IMG/VR virus record: IMGVR_UViG_3300041411_000129
Location: 189,922-253,921 of that record
Direction: 5' to 3' (one strand)
DNA: 64,000 nucleotides
The first letter of the stretch is position 1; each line of letters starts with the position of its first letter. Below the pieces are notes generated by a model. It was not told the origin of the DNA. It ran no database searches and worked only from the letters and a program-made list of their open reading frames with translations. The position numbers and the translations under genes were made by a program. Shown here piece after piece: positions 4,678-12,251 of the stretch.

Positions 4678-5592
4678 ATGCTCAGCATTCCTAGTTACCT
4701 GATTGACACCTGCTTTGCCTTTACTGATAAAGGCTGGTATCCACTCCACATGCTGGCAATGGAAACCAGCCCTAACCGCATCAACGTGATCGTTACAGTT
4801 GCTAACGTCAAGATGATGCCTCATCACTTCCCGTTCGATGTGATGAAGTCACAAGAGCTGAAGAAGCGCACTCTGTGGGAGCGCGTTAAGCAGTTCTTCC
4901 TGAAGTTGATCGGTAAGACTGATATCGAATCCCGTCCAGTCGATCCGGCCAAACCTGAGTTCACTGTCGAGTTCATGCCGCTCGAAGATCTGCTGGACGA
5001 TCTGGCCAACAGTAAGGCTCGCGCCGTTGAGATCGCCAGCTACGCCGACGTCTCCAGCCAACTCTGGATGGGTAGTCCGTTTGAAGACGATCCTCGGTTT
5101 GCTCAGATGTACGAAGGCTTCCACAATCAACTGATGGCGGCAGCTGCTTTGGGCGTCAACTGGGTCGTGGTTGAAAGCGAGTACATCAACCAAGCATTCT
5201 ACCATCGCGACAACTTCCGTAAGCATGTCGAGGCTGTGGTTCGTTCCCGCTACGCCTTCTTCTGCAAGTCGGTCTGCTTTGACCTGAACCATGCGATCAG
5301 TTACCTGCCAGCAAACATGCAGGAACACGCTCGACTGGTATTGGGGTACGAGCCAATCTCTCCAGCGGCTGAAGCTGGTCTGCTGGCGTATTGCAGTCGT
5401 GTGACTGAGAACGGTCCGAAGGATCAACACATCCACACTGAGGGCGTCACTGAGTCGTTCTGGAAGATGCTGAAAGAATATCAGGAACTCCTGAAGCCTG
5501 AAGTTACTACAGCGAAAACAATCGTCCAGAACCATTCCGGTAAGGGCGACAATATCGTAAAGCTCGATAATACGTACAAGGTCAGGAAGTAA
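4678..5592 (+). CDS. hypothetical protein
   Basis: 304-aa ORF with TAAGGA SD. Confidence 0.75.
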   Translation: MLSIPSYLIDTCFAFTDKGWYPLHMLAMETSPNRINVIVTVANVKMMPHHFPFDVMKSQELKKRTLWERVKQFFLKLIGKTDIESRPVDPAKPEFTVEFMPLEDLLDDLANSKARAVEIASYADVSSQLWMGSPFEDDPRFAQMYEGFHNQLMAAAALGVNWVVVESEYINQAFYHRDNFRKHVEAVVRSRYAFFCKSVCFDLNHAISYLPANMQEHARLVLGYEPISPAAEAGLLAYCSRVTENGPKDQHIHTEGVTESFWKMLKEYQELLKPEVTTAKTIVQNHSGKGDNIVKLDNTYKVRK

Positions 5593-5704
5593 CTATCGGC
5601 ATACAGAGGCGGGAATTCCCGCCTCTTATGTCATGCGCTATAAATAAATTCAGTAACACATTACACACTTGAATCCACAACGACATTAGGAGTCTTCAGC
5701 AATA

Positions 5705-5812
5705 ATGGATAAGCTACAAAGCTTTGCAAAGGTTGCAGTTACTGTAATAAGCTTGGCCGTCGCATTAGTGGTGGTTAAGGTTGTAATTGAAATAGCCCGC
5801 CGCGGCGTTTAA
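5705..5812 (+). CDS. 35-aa hydrophobic peptide (not in ORF track)
   Basis: MDKLQSFAKVAVTVISLAVALVVVKVVIEIARRGV after early-type promoter (5647-5675) and AGGAG. Confidence 0.5.
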   Translation: MDKLQSFAKVAVTVISLAVALVVVKVVIEIARRGV

Positions 5813-5834
5813 TATCGCAGATAGGAGTTACCAC

Positions 5835-6383
5835 ATGCTAAGCAAATCCCTTTACAACGAGGCTTGGGAACGAGTCTGTCGTGAGCAAGTTGATTTAGTT
5901 CCAACCGCTTTCTGTAATTACAAAGTCAGTATTGACGATGCGATGACCATCGCCAAAGCTACCACCCATGCCGACGGCAAGCAGTTCATTGGTCGACGCT
6001 TGGCTGGCGAGTGGGAAGAAGGCCGCTACATCCTGTTCCAAGGTAAGTACGGCACCATCGTGGTCTGCTGGAAGACTACCGATGACACTGGAGTCTGGTT
6101 GGTCAAGTCTCCGGAATACGAATTCGCCGGGTATGCTGACTATAATCAGCACGTCCGTGAACTTGAAGCTATGATCGTCGAAGCTGTTGCATTCGGGTTC
6201 AAGCTTGAAGGGGTAACGTTCTGGTACGACAGCACTTACCGCAAGATCACCAAACGGGAAACTCCGAGCAACTTCGATTCGCTGCGCGTTATGCAGCGGT
6301 TGATGGCTACGATCAAACCCGGCCTTGATGTACTCAAACGTCTACACACACCTTTCGCTGAATCAGTAGGAGAAGCTGCATGA
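5835..6383 (+). CDS. hypothetical protein
   Basis: AGGAG SD; 182 aa. Confidence 0.75.
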   Translation: MLSKSLYNEAWERVCREQVDLVPTAFCNYKVSIDDAMTIAKATTHADGKQFIGRRLAGEWEEGRYILFQGKYGTIVVCWKTTDDTGVWLVKSPEYEFAGYADYNQHVRELEAMIVEAVAFGFKLEGVTFWYDSTYRKITKRETPSNFDSLRVMQRLMATIKPGLDVLKRLHTPFAESVGEAA

Positions 6384-6751
6384 GCATCGTAGAACAAAAC
6401 CAACAAGCACTAGGCGTCCTGAAGAAGTTGATGGCCGAGAACCCAACGCCAACTCACCAGTACAAACCGGTAATCGAAGGCGCGATCTACGAAACCACCA
6501 AGAACCGTATCACCACCAAGGTATACGTGGACCGGGTGAAGAAGGATCAGGTTATCCTCAAGCGCGATAAAGACGCCAAGGACAGCTCGACCATCTCTCG
6601 TGCCAAGTTCCAGGCGTTCTACCATCTGGATCAGTTGCCAGAAGGTTGGGTGCCGTCGGCCGATATCTGCGCTGCGATGGAAGGCATCATGAAGTTCGCC
6701 ACCACTCTGGCGGAAATCAAGAAGCGCGTGTCGGAGTCGTCTAATGTCTAA
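6380..6751 (+). CDS. hypothetical protein
   Basis: AGGAG SD, ATGA overlap. Confidence 0.75.
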   Translation: MSIVEQNQQALGVLKKLMAENPTPTHQYKPVIEGAIYETTKNRITTKVYVDRVKKDQVILKRDKDAKDSSTISRAKFQAFYHLDQLPEGWVPSADICAAMEGIMKFATTLAEIKKRVSESSNV

Positions 6752-7247
6752 GCTTATCACCAGCCCTCTTACCACCGGCGTGGATGATCTGGTACTGCCG
6801 TGGGAGACAGCAGTACCGTTATTCCGGATGCATCTGGCTAGCCTAATGCTCAAGCGTGGGATGAGTGTGGTTGAGCTTACTGAGAAGCTCAGTGACTTTA
6901 AAGACACCACCCTCCTTGAGGAGCTCTTTAAAGAACTGTTCGCCGATGACGCGCCTAAAATAGCAATCTCTATTGCAGATAGGCGTTACGAAGCGACTAT
7001 GTCGTTGAGCATAGCCTGTAACGAAGGTGTCATCCTCAACACAGACCTCACGCCGCGGACTCCAGTCGTTAACGTGGCTGAGCTTACGATCGATGAAGTT
7101 GTGGTCGCTATCGCCGAAGCTTATCCAGATTACACTGTTTGGTGTGACGGAGATGAGCGCGTCTATGTCGACGAAGGTGATGATGACCCGAACCTAATGA
7201 GCGTTAAAGACGCTTATCAGAAATACATCGTCGAAACCGGTAAGTAA
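6744..7247 (+). CDS. hypothetical protein
   Basis: GGAG SD; followed by TTCG hairpin terminator. Confidence 0.7.
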   Translation: MSKLITSPLTTGVDDLVLPWETAVPLFRMHLASLMLKRGMSVVELTEKLSDFKDTTLLEELFKELFADDAPKIAISIADRRYEATMSLSIACNEGVILNTDLTPRTPVVNVAELTIDEVVVAIAEAYPDYTVWCDGDERVYVDEGDDDPNLMSVKDAYQKYIVETGK

Positions 7248-7310
7248 TAGCGGGGGAACTTCGGTTCCCCTGTTACTAATTCTTTCTTCTTTTTTGTTGA
7301 GGTAGTTTTT

Positions 7311-7769
7311 ATGGAATTCGACTATAAGCCGGGTAAGTACACGATCACCAAATGCGTCGCTTCTCACTGCGACACCATTGTGTTCGTCGATCTCGATAAC
7401 GGCCAGACATTGTCACTCGGCGGTAAGGGTGTTGTGCCGGTTGTTGGTGACTACGTCATGTGTCATCAACTCCCCGATGGGTTGAAGATGCACATCGAGC
7501 CACCGGCTGAGCCACACCTCCGTGTAAAGGACATGCTCGAGGAATGGAACCTAATAGGTGTCCAACGATTACGCCGGCTCAGTTACGAGCTGGATGGCTT
7601 CAATCATTTAGATGACTTGGAGCAGGTGAAGATCTTCACGGGCTTACAAAATGCAACAGCCGTAGGTATGTTCATCGAACAATGCAAGTTCAAGAACGCC
7701 TACAAGCACGAGAGGAAATTCACTCGGGCAATCAGAGAAGTTGCTCGCGATCTTCACCTACTAGACTAA
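7311..7769 (+). CDS. hypothetical protein
   Basis: GAGGT SD; 152 aa. Confidence 0.7.
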   Translation: MEFDYKPGKYTITKCVASHCDTIVFVDLDNGQTLSLGGKGVVPVVGDYVMCHQLPDGLKMHIEPPAEPHLRVKDMLEEWNLIGVQRLRRLSYELDGFNHLDDLEQVKIFTGLQNATAVGMFIEQCKFKNAYKHERKFTRAIREVARDLHLLD

Positions 7770-7770
7770 C

Positions 7771-7805
7771 ATCCGTAAAAAGTTACGGAAGTAGTAAATA
7801 AGATG
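7771..7805 (+). promoter_or_regulatory. middle/late-type promoter (ATCCGTAAAAAGTTAC-N15-GATG) for the RNA cluster
   Basis: Same CGTAA-nnnn-TTAC-N15-16-TATG pattern at 34771, 56635, 59074; resembles phiKZ AAanntTAC and TATG motifs. Confidence 0.55.
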
Positions 7806-7878
7806 TTCGAACAGCGCCGCGCGTAGCCGCCTCTTCGTAGTGCAGCCGCCCATTGGGCATTTCGCGGCCTGTTCGAAC
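7805..7878 (+). ncRNA. stem-closed structured RNA leading the tRNA cluster
   Basis: GTTCGAACAG/CTGTTCGAAC and GCCGCG/CGCGGC stems; internal GCCC-ATT-GGGC hairpin. Confidence 0.5.
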
Positions 7879-7883
7879 TCTGT

Positions 7884-7960
7884 TCCGCGATAGCTCAGTT
7901 TGGTAGAGCAAACGGCTGTTAACCGTTGGGTCCCTGGTTCGAGTCCAGGTCGTGGAGCCA
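7884..7960 (+). tRNA. trnN: tRNA-Asn (GTT)
   Basis: Full cloverleaf TCCGCGA/TCGTGGA, AACGG-CTGTTAA-CCGTT, TTCGAGT T-loop, encoded CCA. Confidence 0.95.
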
Positions 7961-7975
7961 ATTTCTTGTTGTAAT

Positions 7976-8053
7976 GGTGGGCTTAGCTCAGTTGGTTAGA
8001 GCAGCGGCGGGCTTTGCTGTGTGTCCTAGGTTCGAATCCTAGAGTCCACCCCA
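7976..8053 (+). ncRNA. tRNA-His-like body (G-1:C73) with non-canonical anticodon loop GGGCTTT
   Basis: GGTGGGCT/AGTCCACC-CCA acceptor, normal D and T arms; loop lacks U33 and purine 37. Confidence 0.75.
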
Positions 8054-8060
8054 TATTCTC

Positions 8061-8151
8061 GAGACTGTAGCACAGTGTTAGTGCGATCAGCAGGCGTGGT
8101 AATTCTCGTCGGCTGGAATGCGTGGGTTCGATTCCCAACGGTCTCACCCCA
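8061..8151 (+). ncRNA. tRNA-like RNA with elongated anticodon arm
   Basis: GAGACTG/CGGTCTC acceptor, GCAC/GTGC D stem, TGGG-TTCGATT-CCCA T arm; anticodon arm TCAGC-A-GGCG-(10 nt)-CGTC-G-GCTGG. Confidence 0.7.
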
Positions 8152-8185
8152 TTTCTTTGCAGGGATGCGTAATCGAGTATTAAGC

Positions 8186-8860
8186 ATGTCTGTTGATATC
8201 AGTAACTATCTGATCGCTACACCACTTCCAGTATCTGAAACCAATCCAGTCGCCTTAGAGCTGCTTGGATCTCTGGCATTGATTCAATGTCCTGAGGTTG
8301 TTTCTCAGCTGGAAGATGGGTCTGTTCAATTCACCGCACCTACTAAAGGTGCGTCCAGTAAGAGTACTCACCGTACTCGCACTGAATGGAAAGAACCTGA
8401 GTACTGGGCGTTGTCTAGTGCAGCTAAGCACTGGAGTCGCCAGACGATGACTGTTACTAAAGTCAACTCTGCTCAGAAGGTGGTGGTTGCACAGATTCAC
8501 GTCAAGGATGCTACAACGCCTCCTTTGAAAGTGTTCTGGAACAAAGGTAAGTTGACGATGGGTTTCCGCGGTAGTTTCGCCGATCCTACAATCGTTAACT
8601 ATACCCTCCATACCGACGTACCCTTGGGCGTTCCGTTCAAGATCAGTATCGGTGTGACAGCCAGCGGTTCGGTGTCTGTCAACGCATCATGTCAAGGGGT
8701 TCCTTCCCTAAAGAACGCGTTGAAGTTGAGCAGCACTTGGTTTGACCGCGTACTTCAGTTCCATGGCGGCGTCTACAACCAAGTCGACTACACCGATCTT
8801 ACCTCTGACGAGGATGGTTCGATCTGCATTATCAGTGAGTTGTCTACAACTCACGAATGA
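8186..8860 (+). CDS. polysaccharide lyase family 7 (alginate lyase 2-like)
   Basis: PL7 motifs RTEWKE, AQIH, FHGGVYNQ; ATG 8186 (ORF-track extension overlaps the tRNA-like RNA). Confidence 0.8.
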   Translation: MSVDISNYLIATPLPVSETNPVALELLGSLALIQCPEVVSQLEDGSVQFTAPTKGASSKSTHRTRTEWKEPEYWALSSAAKHWSRQTMTVTKVNSAQKVVVAQIHVKDATTPPLKVFWNKGKLTMGFRGSFADPTIVNYTLHTDVPLGVPFKISIGVTASGSVSVNASCQGVPSLKNALKLSSTWFDRVLQFHGGVYNQVDYTDLTSDEDGSICIISELSTTHE

Positions 8861-8866
8861 TTCAAT

Positions 8867-9018
8867 GACTTCTATAGCTCAGTTGGTAGAGCGTCGTCAC
8901 TCTCTTTAGGTCGCGGGTTCGAGTCCCGTATCCCCAGCAACGGGGATTAGCTCAGTCGGTAGAGCAGAAGAAAATTACGAGACGAAGGTCGTAGGTTCAA
9001 TCCCTGCTAGAAGTCCCA
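8867..9018 (+). ncRNA. double-elbow tRNA-like RNA: outer His-type body with a complete circularly permuted tRNA in place of the anticodon loop
   Basis: Outer GACTTCTA/TAGAAGTC-CCA and TCGTC/GACGA; inner ATCCCC-AGCAAC-GGGGAT and GAAGA/TCTTT; two D arms and two T arms. Confidence 0.8.
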
Positions 9019-9023
9019 ATTAA

Positions 9024-9102
9024 TGATGCAAGCCTGCGCCCGACACTAAGAGCCCGACGATAGTCATATAGCTCACTACGTTGGCCGCAGGCGGCATCAC
9101 CC
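9024..9102 (+). ncRNA. long interrupted hairpin RNA between tRNA units
   Basis: TGATGC/GCATCA, GCCTGCG/CGCAGGC, CCGAC/GTTGG, GAGC/GCTC stems; ends ACCC. Confidence 0.55.
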
Positions 9103-9107
9103 TACAC

Positions 9108-9184
9108 GCGTTCATAGTTCAGCTGGTTAGAATACTCGCCTGTCACGCGAGAGGTCGGGGGTTCGAGTCCCCCTGGACGCGCCA
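9108..9184 (+). tRNA. trnD: tRNA-Asp (GTC)
   Basis: GCGTTCA/TGGACGC acceptor, CTCGC-CTGTCAC-GCGAG, T arm, GCCA end. Confidence 0.95.
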
Positions 9185-9200
9185 TATTCAAATGCTTCAT

Positions 9201-9327
9201 GATTCGCATAGCTCAGTGGTAGAGCGCCCCCACAACGGTTCGACTCCGTACGCATCCATCCTTCGGTTTGGGTGTGACCTGGATAACATGGGGGAGGTCG
9301 ATGGTTCAAGTCCATCTGTGAATCCCA
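9201..9327 (+). ncRNA. double-elbow tRNA-like RNA 2 (His-type acceptor; nested T arm plus UUCG-capped stem)
   Basis: GATTCGCA/TGTGAATC-CCA, CCCCCA/TGGGGG; insert ACGG-TTCGACT-CCGT then CGCATCCA..TTCG..TGGGTGTG then ACCTGGATAACA. Confidence 0.75.
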
Positions 9328-9333
9328 ATTCAA

Positions 9334-9404
9334 TGATCCTTGCAGCGGCTGCGCCTGAGTAAATGCTGTCTTAACTTGACGTTACGGCGTCAAGAGGATC
9401 ACCC
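9334..9404 (+). ncRNA. branched small RNA with minihelix-like stack
   Basis: TGATCCT/AGGATCA directly abutting CTTGACG/CGTCAAG; ends ACCC. Confidence 0.5.
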
Positions 9405-9411
9405 GTTACAC

Positions 9412-9497
9412 GGAGAGGTTCCCGAGCGGTCAAAGGGATCAGACTGTAAATCTGACGCCTAACAGCTTCGAAGGTTCGAATCCTTCTCTCTCCACCA
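9412..9497 (+). tRNA. trnY: tRNA-Tyr (GTA)
   Basis: GGAGAGG/TCTCTCC acceptor, TCAGA-CTGTAAA-TCTGA, long variable arm, ACCA end. Confidence 0.95.
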
Positions 9498-9518
9498 TTT
9501 ACCGCTTTACCGGTTTAT

Positions 9519-9651
9519 CCCTTGGTCAGCCGAAAGGGGCTGGGCGGCTATCTGTTCGATACGGTACGTGAGCGCTTTAGGCAGCTGGCCATAGGCCGCT
9601 CACGTTCGTCGTTCAGAAGCGTCGAGAGTTCAACTCTCTCACTCGGGGCCA
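9519..9651 (+). ncRNA. tRNA-like RNA 3 with nested T-loop module
   Basis: GAGAG-TTCAACT-CTCTC-ACTCGGG-G-CCA 3' end; CTGGGCGGC/GTCGTTCAG arm enclosing CTG-TTCGATA-CGG and ACGTGAGCG/CGCTCACGT. Confidence 0.6.
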
Positions 9652-9655
9652 TACA

Positions 9656-9793
9656 TGACTCCCTGTGGGACATAGGGGCTATAGCTTCGTTCGTGTTAGT
9701 TGTGTGTAGCGGTCTGCTCTGCGGAGCGCGGCCCAACATGGGAACGAGGGTTTCTGATTATCGCCGGGTGTTCGGTAATCAGAGATGGAGTCA
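9656..9793 (+). ncRNA. multi-branch structured RNA
   Basis: TGACTCC/GGAGTCA closing stem; TTCGTTC/GAACGAG; 13-bp TTTCTGATTATCG/CGGTAATCAGAGA. Confidence 0.55.
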
Positions 9794-9801
9794 ACATACA
9801 T

Positions 9802-9913
9802 GGCAAGATGATCTCTGCGAAGATGATCGGAGTACACTCTAGAAGAGTGACTTAACTAGTGCAGTTAAGGACCTAACCGTTACTGAGGTTCGATTCCTCG
9901 TCTTGTCTCACCA
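9802..9913 (+). ncRNA. tRNA-like RNA with T arm and CCA but extra hairpins instead of an anticodon arm
   Basis: GGCAAGA/TCTTGTC, TGAGG-TTCGATT-CCTCG, ends CACCA; internal CACTCT/AGAGTG and CTTAACT/AGTTAAG. Confidence 0.6.
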
Positions 9914-9915
9914 AA

Positions 9916-9946
9916 CATAAAGCCCGGCATTCCGCCGGGCTTTATG
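9916..9946. repeat. CATA-GC stem-TATG palindromic hairpin (family of ~11 copies; likely terminator)
   Basis: CATAAAGCCCGGC-ATTCC-GCCGGGCTTTATG; near-identical at 47056, 56955, 59902, 60928. Confidence 0.75.
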
Positions 9947-9971
9947 CTGTCACTAACTAAACTGAAGAGAA

Positions 9972-10493
9972 ATGCAAATGACCACTACCTCACGACCAGC
10001 CTACGACTTTAAGGCAATGGTGCAGAGTTTGATCGAACCGTTTACCACTAATGCTGAGTGGTTTGAAGAATGCCGGCTGATGATCGGTTGTGATGACGGC
10101 CATTACTTGAAGGAATTCAAGACCGTCGGTATCGCAGGTCCTCGGCAATGTGGTAAGACGAAGATGCTAATGGAGCTCTTCAGTGTAACACCTGATAGTC
10201 TTTACGTGGTTCCTAATCTGCCACTGAAGAACGCATTAATTGGCTGGGCTACTAATCCAGTTAGTGAGCGTGGTTATGGATTGACGATCCCTGTTGATCG
10301 AGTCGTTACCTCGTATGACATTAAACAAGCTATCAACGCCGTCAAGCACGGCGGTGAGGATACCTTGCCCAAGGCTAGCACTATCTTCGTTGATAGTCCT
10401 TACGGTGTCTTTAGCGAGCTCAGAAAGGCCAAGTTTTATAACTGGCTCGCTGAACGCGGTGGCCACAAACAAATCATCATCACAATTGAATAA
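9972..10493 (+). CDS. P-loop NTPase-like protein
   Basis: Walker A GPRQCGKT; IFVD Walker B-like. Confidence 0.6.
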   Translation: MQMTTTSRPAYDFKAMVQSLIEPFTTNAEWFEECRLMIGCDDGHYLKEFKTVGIAGPRQCGKTKMLMELFSVTPDSLYVVPNLPLKNALIGWATNPVSERGYGLTIPVDRVVTSYDIKQAINAVKHGGEDTLPKASTIFVDSPYGVFSELRKAKFYNWLAERGGHKQIIITIE

Positions 10494-10505
10494 GTGAGTA
10501 GCAGC

Positions 10506-10697
10506 ATGTCCCATCGTGAAATCGATGCAGAAGTCGAAGAGTTGTTGAAGTCGGTTACTAACACCGGTATCAAACAACTCAAGTGCTGCAATGCCACTAA
10601 CCAGAAAGCTCTCAATGAGCTGGTTAATGACATCAACGCCGCCTTCACTAAGGCTGCGCGCGCCTCTACTAAAACCCCCGGTAGCACCGTCCTTTAA
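10506..10697 (+). CDS. hypothetical protein
   Basis: Short ORF in operon. Confidence 0.5.
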   Translation: MSHREIDAEVEELLKSVTNTGIKQLKCCNATNQKALNELVNDINAAFTKAARASTKTPGSTVL

Positions 10698-10713
10698 GAT
10701 CTAGGAGTTTCAC

Positions 10714-11124
10714 ATGTCTGAAGTAACTGAAGTAAAGCCAGTTGTACAAATGGCAAACCAACAACGCCTTCTGGAAATGATGGGTGAGTTCCACACCCGT
10801 GATGAGATCGACGTTCCAGCGTTCTTCGAACGTGTGCGGGAGTGGGTGGCTATCCCTGAAGACGACCGCTATTCGATCGAGCTGATCGGTCTGAACATCG
10901 TCTGGTTTGCTGCGGTGATCGATAAGATCTACCCGAGCGTGGTCGACGAATACGGCGACGACATCAAGAAGTTCGAAGCGTTCATTACCGAGCGTCTTGG
11001 CAAACACGCCAAGTACGTACGTTCCGGCGTCCTGTACCAGAACTCCCTCAAGAACTGGCTGTGTAAGTTCAACTGGGAAACTGCGCTCAAGATCCCACTG
11101 TCCTTCACTCTGCGTGATCGGTAA
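10714..11124 (+). CDS. hypothetical protein
   Basis: AGGAG SD. Confidence 0.75.
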   Translation: MSEVTEVKPVVQMANQQRLLEMMGEFHTRDEIDVPAFFERVREWVAIPEDDRYSIELIGLNIVWFAAVIDKIYPSVVDEYGDDIKKFEAFITERLGKHAKYVRSGVLYQNSLKNWLCKFNWETALKIPLSFTLRDR

Positions 11125-11134
11125 GGGGGGGGGG
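11125..11134 (+). repeat. G10 homopolymer at RBS position
   Basis: TAA-G10-TGTA-ATG. Confidence 0.8.
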
Positions 11135-11138
11135 TGTA

Positions 11139-11498
11139 ATGTTCGTACCTTTCAAAGTCCCTGACCTTGAAGGCGCTACAGAGGCCACACCAGCTCGAGT
11201 ATGGGTTGGTCTGGTCGATGTAGTGAAGACCTTCAAATGGGCGCTTGTAGGAGCTGCCAAGCAGAAGCAGCTCAGCTTTAAGCAAGCCACCGAACTGCTC
11301 AACGATCCTACTACGCCAGAAGACTGGCAGGTGGTTCGTGAATTAATCCAGATTATGTTTTCTAAACATCCGGAGGGGTACATTCTTAAGCGATCCGTCG
11401 GCCTTGGTACTAAAGAGACGTTGAACGTCAGACTCAATCGAGTCGGTAAGTGCAAGGTTAAGCTCAACATCTATTCGGTTAGGTTAGGGCGCTACTAA
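11139..11498 (+). CDS. hypothetical protein
   Basis: 119-aa ORF. Confidence 0.65.
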   Translation: MFVPFKVPDLEGATEATPARVWVGLVDVVKTFKWALVGAAKQKQLSFKQATELLNDPTTPEDWQVVRELIQIMFSKHPEGYILKRSVGLGTKETLNVRLNRVGKCKVKLNIYSVRLGRY

Positions 11499-11507
11499 GG
11501 AGCGGTT

Positions 11508-11744
11508 ATGTTAGGTACAGGAATTATCGGAAGAAGAACGTATTCGTGGCCGGAGTATTATCATCACGAGTATGACCGCTACGGTACACGACGGAGCGCG
11601 ATGTATTACTTCCCCCTCAAGGATGAGCAATCCCCGCTTCGGCTGAGTTGGAAAGAGGAAGCGAAACGTCCTTGGCTGAAGCCTAAACCGAAAGCTAAAG
11701 AGATCTCTTCTAATCTCTACAAGCTTCTCGCCCGTTCTAATTAA
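11508..11744 (+). CDS. hypothetical protein
   Basis: AAGGAG SD. Confidence 0.6.
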   Translation: MLGTGIIGRRTYSWPEYYHHEYDRYGTRRSAMYYFPLKDEQSPLRLSWKEEAKRPWLKPKPKAKEISSNLYKLLARSN

Positions 11745-11749
11745 TCGGA

Positions 11750-11974
11750 GTGATCGAAATGCATGAACCAAGCAAAACACCTATCGCCGATTTGGGCGAT
11801 GACTTCGAACCGGAGTCGCAAGAGGACTTCGCGGAACGTCAACTGACTGGCGAGTTTGATGGCAAGTCGGAAGATGAAATCCGCGACATCTATGTCCGTG
11901 AAGAAGCGGACGACAATCACGAGCATGAGCAACGACTCATTGATGAGGAGGAAGCTGCGGATGACGATGACTAA
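11750..11974 (+). CDS. small highly acidic protein
   Basis: Asp/Glu-dominated 74-aa ORF (start may be ATG 11759). Confidence 0.6.
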   Translation: MIEMHEPSKTPIADLGDDFEPESQEDFAERQLTGEFDGKSEDEIRDIYVREEADDNHEHEQRLIDEEEAADDDD

Positions 11975-12251
11975 TATCGATCTCAAGGCTCACGTCCAAA
12001 GAACAATGGATGCTGCCTTACAGTACTTCGTAGGGACTAAGAAGCTTTCGTTCAAGGAGTTTGATTCAGACTTAGGACCTTTCCTTGAGGCCCACCTGAA
12101 ACAACTTCCGCGTTATGAGCGACTGAGCTATAAGCTCCATTCGTTCCCTGATGGTGATCACTTTGACATCGGTATCGTATTCGATGGCGGCTTTGTAGCC
12201 GCGCAGCTGTTCGAGGTTGATCCGATCAAATCATCGACAACCTTTCATTAA
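11961..12251 (+). CDS. hypothetical protein
   Basis: GAGGAGG SD before ATG 11961. Confidence 0.6.
   Translation: MTMTNIDLKAHVQRTMDAALQYFVGTKKLSFKEFDSDLGPFLEAHLKQLPRYERLSYKLHSFPDGDHFDIGIVFDGGFVAAQLFEVDPIKSSTTFH

Follow-up and report, generated by a model that had tools for sequence, protein, structure and literature searches.

The tRNA array and its genomic setting

The window analysed here, a 64,000-nucleotide stretch of DNA, is a portion of a 254-kb contig from an uncultivated jumbo phage (IMG/VR UViG_3300041411_000129) whose nearest cultured relative, judged by an alginate-lyase-like neighbour gene (8189-8860), is Pseudomonas phage Psa21. A cluster of tRNA genes occupies 7880-9950 on the + strand, in which ARAGORN in its default mode and Rfam at its gathering thresholds report five ordinary-looking tRNAs. 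Both programs miss 8867-9018 and 9201-9327, two elements with the frame of a tRNA in which a second tRNA-like elbow sits where the anticodon loop belongs. We refer to these as double-elbow RNAs, of the E1 type (8867-9018) and the E2 type (9201-9327). The Rfam tRNA model gives a partial match to 9201-9327, and ARAGORN detects this element in intron mode only.

Double-elbow genes lie in tRNA arrays in every case, often with several different ones side by side. One neighbour is conserved beside the arrays, here the gene at 9972-10493, which encodes a generic RecA-like P-loop domain; its product has no sequence match in the PDB and only weak fold matches (TM-score ≤0.45). Scans of the neighbouring genes with Pfam, PHROGs and NCBIfam revealed no tRNA-related partner gene beside the arrays, and no sigma-70 promoter-like sites were found flanking the cluster.

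Architecture of the E2-type RNA

The unconstrained minimum-free-energy fold of 9201-9327 consists of exactly the helices read by eye, and the elements named in the initial annotation (the outer body, the D arm, the AGGTC variable loop, the stems and the parts of the insert) were all confirmed in place (Table 1). With an acceptor stem, a D arm, a T arm and a 3' CCA, the outer frame fulfils the criteria for a cloverleaf. The insert that replaces the anticodon loop is joined to the outer anticodon stem by 2 nt on its 5' side and 12 nt on its 3' side in the E2 type. Within it, the acceptor-like stem stacks on the inner T arm and is closed by its cap, leaving no free ends, and the inner T stem is 5 bp long in the distant homologues as against 4 bp in 9201-9327. 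The folding energy of the element is ordinary (z = -1.07), and thermodynamics alone therefore provides no proof of the fold; the proof is comparative.

The extra pair G-1:C73 at the end of the outer acceptor is shared by 9201-9327, 8867-9018 and 7976-8053, together with their close orthologues. G-1:C73 is the main identity element for HisRS in bacteria, and an 8-bp acceptor is as found in bacterial tRNA-His.

Table 1. Double-elbow RNAs of the window and the parts from which they are built
Feature	Coordinates	Strand	Remarks
E1-type double-elbow RNA	8867..9018	+	Outer tRNA with G-1:C73 and CCA; minimum-free-energy fold z = -2.32
Complete circularly permuted tRNA in the E1 anticodon loop	8903-8971	+	Own T arm, capped acceptor, D arm and anticodon stem
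E2-type double-elbow RNA	9201..9327	+	Outer tRNA frame whose anticodon loop gives way to a 56-nt second-elbow insert
Outer acceptor, 5' strand	9201..9208	+	Partner 9317-9324; 8-bp stem, first pair G-1:C73
Outer D arm (GCTC, AGTGGTA, GAGC)	9211..9225	+	Invariant across all E2-type homologues
Outer anticodon stem, 5' strand (CCCCCA)	9227..9232	+	Partner 9289-9294; closes the whole insert
Inner T arm (ACGG-TTCGACT-CCGT)	9235..9249	+	4-bp stem, T loop TTCGACT
Inner acceptor-like stem, 8 bp (CGCATCCA/TGGGTGTG)	9251..9276	+	9251-9258 paired with 9269-9276; C-UUCG-G cap
Single strand (ACCTGGATAACA)	9277..9288	+	12 nt with GG; proposed stemless D-loop mimic
Outer anticodon stem, 3' strand (TGGGGG)	9289..9294	+	Helix in the covariation alignment
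Outer variable loop (AGGTC)	9295..9299	+	Read from the sequence
Outer T arm (GATGG, TTCAAGT, CCATC)	9300..9316	+	Helix 7, covarying
Outer acceptor, 3' strand	9317..9324	+	C73 last; encoded CCA at 9325-9327

Conservation and covariation of the E2 type

Homologues of 9201-9327 were drawn from 12 metagenomic phage contigs, and eight distinct E2-type sequences were aligned with MAFFT (alignment A6, preceded by a seven-sequence version of the covariation analysis). Close orthologues are those of L005, L431 and L004, and the distant ones are those of L103, L330, L345 and L511. Standard pairs fill 96.2% of the pair cells of A6, compared with 82.1% once the alignment is shuffled, and pairing falls to 30-45% in a control in which the 3' partners are slid by 1-3 columns. 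Both sides have changed at 17 of the 36 pairs, and the covariation score is 0.494 as against 0.209 in shuffles, with none of 500 shuffles attaining 0.494. The set is nonetheless small, its eight sequences representing about five lineages, so that the shuffle statistics overstate independence.

Compensatory changes are present in each E2 helix that varies, the inner stems and the insert-closing anticodon stem among them. Double-sided changes are seen in six of the eight pairs of the outer acceptor (helix 1), in four of the six pairs of the outer anticodon stem (helix 3) and in all five pairs of the outer T stem (helix 7). The inner T loop (GGTTCGANTCC) and the core of the inner T stem are invariant among the E2 homologues, the closing pair of the inner T arm switches from A-U to U-A in four of the eight sequences, and the inner cap CTTCGG (CUUCGG in RNA) is invariant in the type. 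The single strand contains a motif, YUGGAUAMCA, that holds the GG and is kept in the window clade, in L345/L330 and in L511. This conservation fits a mimic of the D loop that lacks a stem; the tertiary contact between the T loop and the GG is itself inferred, and only the conservation of the two partners is shown. At the outer -1:73 position the window clade has G-1:C73, whereas L103, L345 and L330 have U:A and the two bases are unpaired in L511.

A covariance model built from A6 (R1) gives 120-139 bits to the eight aligned homologues and to an identical copy in L510, and no more than 73 bits to all other sequences. Ordinary tRNAs reach up to 67 bits with R1, and a score below about 75 bits is not diagnostic on its own; because these low scores are ambiguous, every candidate was individually folded. 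Three proteins encoded beside the array in the window have homologues at 30-45% identity in L345, and likewise in L103 or L330, with the gene order preserved. As the RNA still scores 120-139 bits where the proteins are only 30-45% identical, it has been retained while the proteins strongly diverged. Both halves of the double-elbow RNAs are held by selection on structure.

The E1 type, a tRNA within a tRNA

The insert of 8867-9018 runs in the order anticodon 3' strand, variable loop, T arm, acceptor 3' strand, cap, acceptor 5' strand, D arm and anticodon 5' strand. All eight helices of the RNA are kept in nine distinct homologues, with many compensatory variants; these include ATCCCC/GGGGAT, CACCGC/GCGGTG and ATGGGTC/GACCCAT in the inner acceptor, TCGTC/GACGA, ACGCC/GGCGT and CCGTT/GACGG in the outer anticodon stem, and TCTTT/GAAGA and CCTTA/TAAGG in the inner anticodon stem. 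The inner acceptor is 6-7 bp long and its cap ranges from 4 to 30 nt with the inner helices all intact, the whole insert measuring 69-102 nt and its junctions consisting of 1-4 nt opposite 6-10 nt. RNAalifold, run on a plain MAFFT alignment of the E1 type, independently recovered the outer stems around the insert, with compensatory changes at 15 of 35 pairs. Outside the window clade the outer -1:73 bases of the E1 type are U/C or U/U.

The best non-tRNA Rfam match of the region is that of the 8867-9018 insert to YrlA (RF02553), an end-to-end match of 40.9 bits (E = 1e-6) for which the gathering threshold is 69. The E1 and E2 types are two separate orthologous groups and not a single alignable family.

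Tandem identical tRNAs are a class of false positive in a search for nested tRNAs, and these were filtered out by a cross-pair test that compares pairing in cis with pairing in the nested arrangement. Neither the E1 nor the E2 type shows any pairing in cis, with cross-pair scores of 0-4 out of 7, and in both the nested helices pair perfectly. A purpose-built nested-tRNA scanner was run on 4.6 Mb of real loci, where it made 20 hits; on reversed or shuffled versions of these loci it made none.

Distribution of double-elbow RNAs

The same topology, in which the outer anticodon stem leads into an inner T arm and a capped stem followed by either a GG strand or a D arm, recurs in RNAs of unrelated sequence. 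One such lineage comprises L130, L111, which has an array with three copies, and FLC9, a cultured Burkholderia phage; another is made up of 13 IMG/VR contigs that share a conserved 28-nt strand. L103, L330, L345, L511 and FLC9 carry members of a third orthologous group, whose inner D arm is tRNA-Leu-like, and additional E1-like elements are found in L364 and L358. In L103, L330, L345 and L511 a single array holds the E1, E2 and Leu-like types together.

Searches with sequence patterns located the E2 type in 11 IMG/VR contigs and the E1 type in 7, and neither pattern gave a hit in 185,579 bacterial and archaeal species (one genome each). Insofar as it rests on these two patterns, the conclusion that the family is specific to phages is a likely one. 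Comparison of the window region with GenBank phages by blastn gave matches to ordinary tRNAs only, as did that of the L345 array, and blastn of group 2 against the same phages gave no match whatsoever. The syntenic region of Psa21 contains no E1 or E2 element, and the only array that leads to a cultured phage is that of L111, through which FLC9 was reached. A metagenome scan by way of a neighbouring protein yielded just one new orthologue, L431. Broad patterns of a D arm followed by a T loop matched mainly mini tRNA-likes and tandem tRNAs.

We found no description of a natural tRNA-in-tRNA or double-elbow RNA in the literature searched. Closest among the published work found there are a paper on YrlA (PMC4201824) and surveys in which 'tRNA-like' candidates from viral contigs are reported as unexplained (PMC10690425). 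The double-elbow RNAs are a real family and, as far as that literature shows, an apparently undescribed one.

The initial annotation, made from sequence alone, had claimed that double elbows make a family, and this held, with the same topology built from unrelated stems in several lineages and with nine E1 homologues. Its claim that 8867-9018 shares the topology of 9201-9327 also held, but the former proved richer, with a complete permuted tRNA that has its own D arm and anticodon stem. The inference that the second elbow is the selected feature was likewise upheld by the invariant inner T loop and by inner stems that covary despite flanking protein identities of 30-45%. It had offered two findings as grounds for refutation: an inner T loop that is fully reactive and not conserved in homologues, where by sequence the loop is invariant, and splicing that leaves a normal anticodon loop, for which no conserved loop is seen, although the evidence on this is confined to sequence. 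Its comparison of the single strand with the stemless D loop of tmRNA is supported by the conserved GG strand in YUGGAUAMCA, the docking being inferred. One proposal failed, namely the inclusion of 9519-9651 as a third member of a covariance model; this element has a tRNA-like acceptor and T arm but is missing a second T loop, and it was rejected as a double elbow and is unfit for the model.

Relationship to known RNAs

The double-elbow RNAs resemble YrlA (RF02553) in having a permuted tRNA-like module, composed of a T arm, a loop-closed acceptor-like stem and a D arm, that is mounted on a closing helix. The YrlA module is a mimic of the tRNA elbow, and the tRNA enzymes TruB and DusA modify it (PMC4201824). 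The module order is fully present in the E1 type; in the E2 type the T arm and capped stem are followed by no more than a D-loop strand, and, unlike YrlA, this type is without any D stem. The double elbows also differ in their closing helix, for which they use the anticodon stem of a second, complete tRNA with a CCA end of its own.

The tRNA-like domain of tmRNA is a second point of comparison, since a T arm on an acceptor stem with the D loop reduced to a single strand containing GG is the design of 9235-9288, and permuted two-piece tmRNA genes join the acceptor strands by a linker much as the inner stem of the double elbows is capped. The double elbows, however, have no tag reading frame, pseudoknots or inner CCA, and their inner acceptor is capped. 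Identity with tmRNA was considered and rejected: ARAGORN reports no tmRNA, and in Rfam the match reaches only 19.7 bits where 70 are required.

Intron-containing, split and circularly permuted tRNA genes, known from archaea and Cyanidioschyzon merolae, likewise carry extra sequence at the anticodon loop, and the permuted genes place the 3' half ahead of the 5' half as does the inner unit of the E1 type. The double elbows differ in lacking a bulge-helix-bulge and in having no conserved anticodon after removal of the insert, and the permuted unit of the E1 type is nested in another tRNA rather than forming its own gene as in those organisms. Bacteria are not known to possess a splicing enzyme for tRNA inserts of this kind.

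With G-1:C73 followed by CCA, the outer acceptor of the window clade resembles that of tRNA-His, but there is no anticodon loop and so no GUG anticodon, and the -1:73 feature is lost in the distant homologues. Histidine-accepting viral tRNA-like structures have been covered elsewhere (PMC8127992); they are the 3' ends of RNA genomes, whereas the double elbows are genes of DNA phages. A final parallel is man-made. Engineered tRNA scaffolds, in which the anticodon stem carries a grafted structured RNA, reportedly yield chimeras that are processed and protected like a tRNA (Ponchon and Dardel 2007). The double elbows differ from these in being natural and conserved, and in carrying a payload that is itself tRNA-like.

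Alternative explanations

One alternative is that these are intron-containing tRNA genes from which the insert (56 nt in the E2 type) is spliced to leave an ordinary decoding tRNA. ARAGORN in intron mode does call both 8867-9018 and 9201-9327 a 'tRNA with intron', the 7 nt (AUAACAU) that immediately precede the 3' anticodon strand in 9201-9327 resemble an anticodon loop with U33 and A37, and group I introns do occur in other phage tRNA genes. However, the anticodons that ARAGORN is forced to assign vary among orthologues (Val-AAC and Arg-ACG in the E2 type; Val-UAC, Glu-CUC and Val-CAC in the E1 type), and the U33 of the only plausible loop is missing in L004. Inserts of 56 nt, or of 69-102 nt in the E1 type, are far too short for a group I intron, which requires about 200 nt or more and a catalytic core, and no intron family of Rfam was matched in 7000-12000 at E values up to 10. 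Both the minimum-free-energy and the consensus structures are devoid of a bulge-helix-bulge, with no 3-nt bulges spaced by a 4-bp helix. The insert is itself under selection, with covarying helices and an invariant T loop, neither of which an excised spacer would need, and the E1 caps can be anything from 4 to 30 nt while every inner helix is preserved. We consider the intron explanation very unlikely, although splicing, like cleavage at the inner cap, can be excluded only by experiment. The absence of a 7-nt anticodon loop with U33 and a conserved anticodon makes it likely, as an inference from sequence, that 9201-9327 does not decode. An origin without function, as decayed or recombined tandem tRNA genes or as an assembly artefact, is suggested by the composition of the E1 type, which is the part list of two tandem tRNAs with the halves swapped, and by the spurious 'nested' hits that a naive scan gives on tandem identical tRNAs. 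It is all but ruled out by the perfect nested pairings in the absence of cis pairings, by the recurrence of these elements across independent assemblies, where each helix has compensatory changes, and by their persistence while the neighbouring proteins fell to 30-45% identity.

The remaining alternatives accept the fold and assign it a different role. In one, the insert is the tRNA-like module of a YrlA-type Y RNA that binds the Ro60/Rsr ring of the phage or its host and tethers an exonuclease. The 40.9-bit match of the E1 insert speaks for this, as does its permuted arrangement, in which T arm, capped acceptor and D arm follow one another as they do in YrlA. YrlA genes have been found in phages (PMC4201824) and a TROVE protein in some jumbo phages (PMC7824862). 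The score is nevertheless under the gathering threshold of 69, the insert of 9201-9327 has no YrlA match at all, and tandem or nested tRNA parts are a known cause of false YrlA hits (PMC4201824). The helix that closes the module is the anticodon stem of a full tRNA, the 5'-strand Ro60 motif GNCGAAN0-1G is absent, and the ends of 9201-9327 form a tRNA acceptor stem in place of a Ro60-binding helix. A search with Pfam of 30 ORFs of the window, including all five of at least 400 aa, found no TROVE domain, a result that applies to the window only. This explanation, too, we regard as very unlikely. Somewhat less improbable, though still unlikely, is a two-piece precursor in which RNase P and 3' processing open the inner cap to give two paired strands. 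Such a product would have two acceptor ends, both of which might carry CCA and be charged. The inner stem and T stem together amount to 12-13 bp, which is the length that RNase P measures from the elbow; the short E1 inner acceptors, with caps that vary so freely, look like a disposable linker; M. smegmatis YrlA is cut in precisely this way by RNase P and receives CCA (PMC4201824); and 9227-9294 has a weak match to the permuted cyanobacterial tmRNA model (19.7 bits). Against this, that score is far below the threshold of 70, no member encodes a discriminator and CCA after the inner 3' strand, the YrlA of S. Typhimurium and Yrn1 of D. radiodurans remain uncleaved (PMC4201824), and the conserved and very stable C-UUCG-G hairpin of the E2 type favours a closed end. 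Opening of the inner cap by RNase P thus remains a live, if improbable, alternative for the E1 type and is less likely still for the UUCG-capped E2 type.

A possible role as a tRNA-scaffold RNA

The reading that we put forward in place of these alternatives is that 9201-9327 is the gene of a stable, non-decoding, tRNA-derived ncRNA and belongs to a phage-specific family of tRNA scaffolds that carry a second elbow as payload. There are no expression, end-mapping, modification or binding data for any double-elbow member, and in their absence this proposal could prove right or wrong with equal ease. A plausible scenario is that the outer acceptor, D and T arms would let the host tRNA machinery (RNase P, 3' trimming, the CCA enzyme and the enzymes that modify T loops) excise the RNA from a polycistronic tRNA transcript and stabilise it. 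In the window clade G-1:C73 would shift the RNase P cut one base early, to -1, producing an 8-bp acceptor end like that of tRNA-His. The inner T arm is predicted to stack on the capped stem, with the GG strand docking there. In the E2 type the outer anticodon stem would double as the D/anticodon (long) arm of a second L, and in the E1 type a small internal loop would link two full L shapes, anticodon stem to anticodon stem. The molecule would then display two elbows and a single free CCA end.

The outer acceptor sequences and the -1:73 bases vary freely between clades, and the frame therefore seems to be needed as a shape and not for aminoacylation identity. An identity common to the family is thus unlikely, while the His-like acceptor end may possibly be specific to a clade. 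Conservation falls on the inner T loop, the cap and the GG strand, which points to the second elbow as the payload. Speculatively, the RNA may act as a bivalent tRNA mimic that occupies a factor reading the tRNA elbow or body and not the anticodon, two elbows giving the avidity that would be needed against a large cellular pool of tRNA. It could be aimed at a multimeric defence nuclease that targets tRNA, at RNase P or at the L1 stalk of the ribosome. Such a decoy role is conceivable, and it rests on the architecture alone. A bolder version, which we think improbable, is that the phages maintain a toolkit of tRNA-scaffold RNAs and that double elbows on a rigid rod have a much higher affinity than single tRNAs for a multimeric factor specific for the tRNA body, blocking or redirecting that factor during infection. 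Were this true, it would represent a new RNA-based principle of counter-defence or takeover, with targets that include a defence enzyme directed at the anticodon or acceptor, RNase P or the L1 stalk.

Mimicry of tRNA is recurrent, being known from tmRNA, Y RNAs, viral tRNA-like structures and mascRNA, and what is apparently new here is a natural tRNA-like domain inside the anticodon loop of another tRNA. The double elbows offer a natural system for asking what recognises an isolated tRNA elbow in bacteria, a question that was left open for the YrlA module. Because neither default-mode ARAGORN nor Rfam at gathering thresholds picks up the family, phage tRNA repertoires and calls of 'tRNA with intron' may be misread; in the GenBank record of FLC9 the double-elbow region is blank, with no annotation. 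The carriers are distantly related jumbo phages of soil and plant-associated bacteria. Conservation of the double elbows across such phages, in arrays with other tRNA-frame RNAs that bear different inserts, suggests that the tRNA body serves as a general chassis for small functional RNAs; in L103, L330 and L345 the same array also contains tRNA frames with simple hairpin inserts.

Double and triple T arms in other RNAs

An RNA with a tRNA frame and a double T arm is present in 13 IMG/VR contigs. Its single strand is highly conserved and consists of UGUGUAGGGU, 1-2 variable nucleotides, and then CAAGCGAGUGUG. In three of the four examples inspected the RNA ends in ACAA rather than CCA, and the only Rfam match obtained is 'tRNA'. 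A further contig, L359, has three T arms within a single acceptor closure, and this could be a triple-elbow variant.

Arrays of tRNA-frame RNAs and the adjacent P-loop protein

In L345, a distant relative of the window, the array at 5589-7170 holds six tRNA-frame RNAs, all different and each with a structured insert, and similar arrays are seen in the distant relatives L103 and L330. Each RNA in the L345 array is followed by N-CCU, in most cases with AUU next, in place of CCA, and adjacent RNAs are separated by only ~7 nt. Because of this pattern, which is evident at the sequence level only, we infer that the members of such arrays may have a 3'-processing signal in common. The cultured jumbo phage FLC9 has a tRNA cluster for which no tRNA features are annotated in the GenBank record; ARAGORN reports nine tRNAs there, and the region contains three more tRNA-frame RNAs with inserts.

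In distant relatives, at ~43% identity, a single-domain P-loop protein is still encoded a short way downstream of the tRNA-frame arrays. Its AlphaFold model has a pLDDT of 77.6, and structure and family comparisons gave no specific match.

Simple hairpin inserts and mini tRNA-like elements

Shorter tRNA frames recur among jumbo phages, including those similar to Pseudomonas phage Psa21. Of the five listed, all but L521 were folded, and in all four the anticodon loop gives way to a hairpin plus a single strand in which ACCA is often present. The acceptor stem sequence AGCACTG is common to the L018 frame and the E1-type (tRNA-in-tRNA) RNA of L103.

At least 87 distinct mini elements, each 56-65 nt, are found in IMG/VR contigs L086-L203. 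These are tRNAs from which the whole anticodon arm is gone. Their acceptor stem encloses a D arm and, after a linker of 8-14 nt, a T arm, and CCA is encoded in only a minority. They have the appearance of an abundant 'elbow-only' class of mini tRNA-likes, although we propose this tentatively.

Other elements of the window cluster

The tRNA at 7976-8053 has a seven-nucleotide anticodon loop (GGGCUUU) that lacks U33 and has a pyrimidine at position 37. ARAGORN labels it tRNA-Ser(GCU), as it does the counterparts in the close relatives L004 and L005, yet there is no long variable arm. It looks like a further His-type tRNA, perhaps one that is non-decoding or oddly decoding. For the neighboring frame at 8061-8148, ARAGORN alternates between Leu(CAG) and Thr(CGU) with an intron.

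In the 9519-9651 RNA the anticodon arm is replaced by a long arm of ~70 nt (fold z = -3.6), and a second T loop is absent. L004 retains this RNA at 95%; L005 and L431, also close relatives, have only its last 46 nt in common. Two further RNAs, the second of them tRNA-like, lie within 9655-9915, and the transcription unit likely ends at the GC-rich hairpin beyond them.

Locations of the RNA and protein features; (-), minus strand
Feature	Size	Location
tRNA with tRNA-His-like end (G-1:C73, CCA)	77 nt	window 7976-8053
tRNA frame, anticodon region larger by ~13-22 nt, ACCCCA tail		window 8061-8148
tRNA-like acceptor and T arm, hairpin replacing D arm		window 9519-9651
Conserved structured RNA	~140 nt	window 9655-9795
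tRNA-like RNA (acceptor, T arm, three hairpins), directly 3' of the preceding RNA	110 nt	window 9802-9911
GC-rich hairpin		window ~9920-9945
RecA-like P-loop protein, single-domain, phrog_2586	173 aa	window 9972-10493; L345:7985-8503; L330:2425-2955
Double-T-arm RNA		L085:4856-4981; L135:2847-2973(-); L158:12519-12645(-); L166:7770-7894(-); also L513-L519
Three T arms within single acceptor closure	167 nt	L359:464-630(-)
tRNA frames	~100-115 nt	L009:7532-7643; L018:6896-6998; L103:8133-8244; L364:3273-3385; L521:3778-3890
Mini tRNA-like examples		L088:1566-1622; L090:3078-3134(-)
tRNA cluster of Burkholderia phage FLC9 (L520)		LC667451.1, ~128.3-129.7 kb
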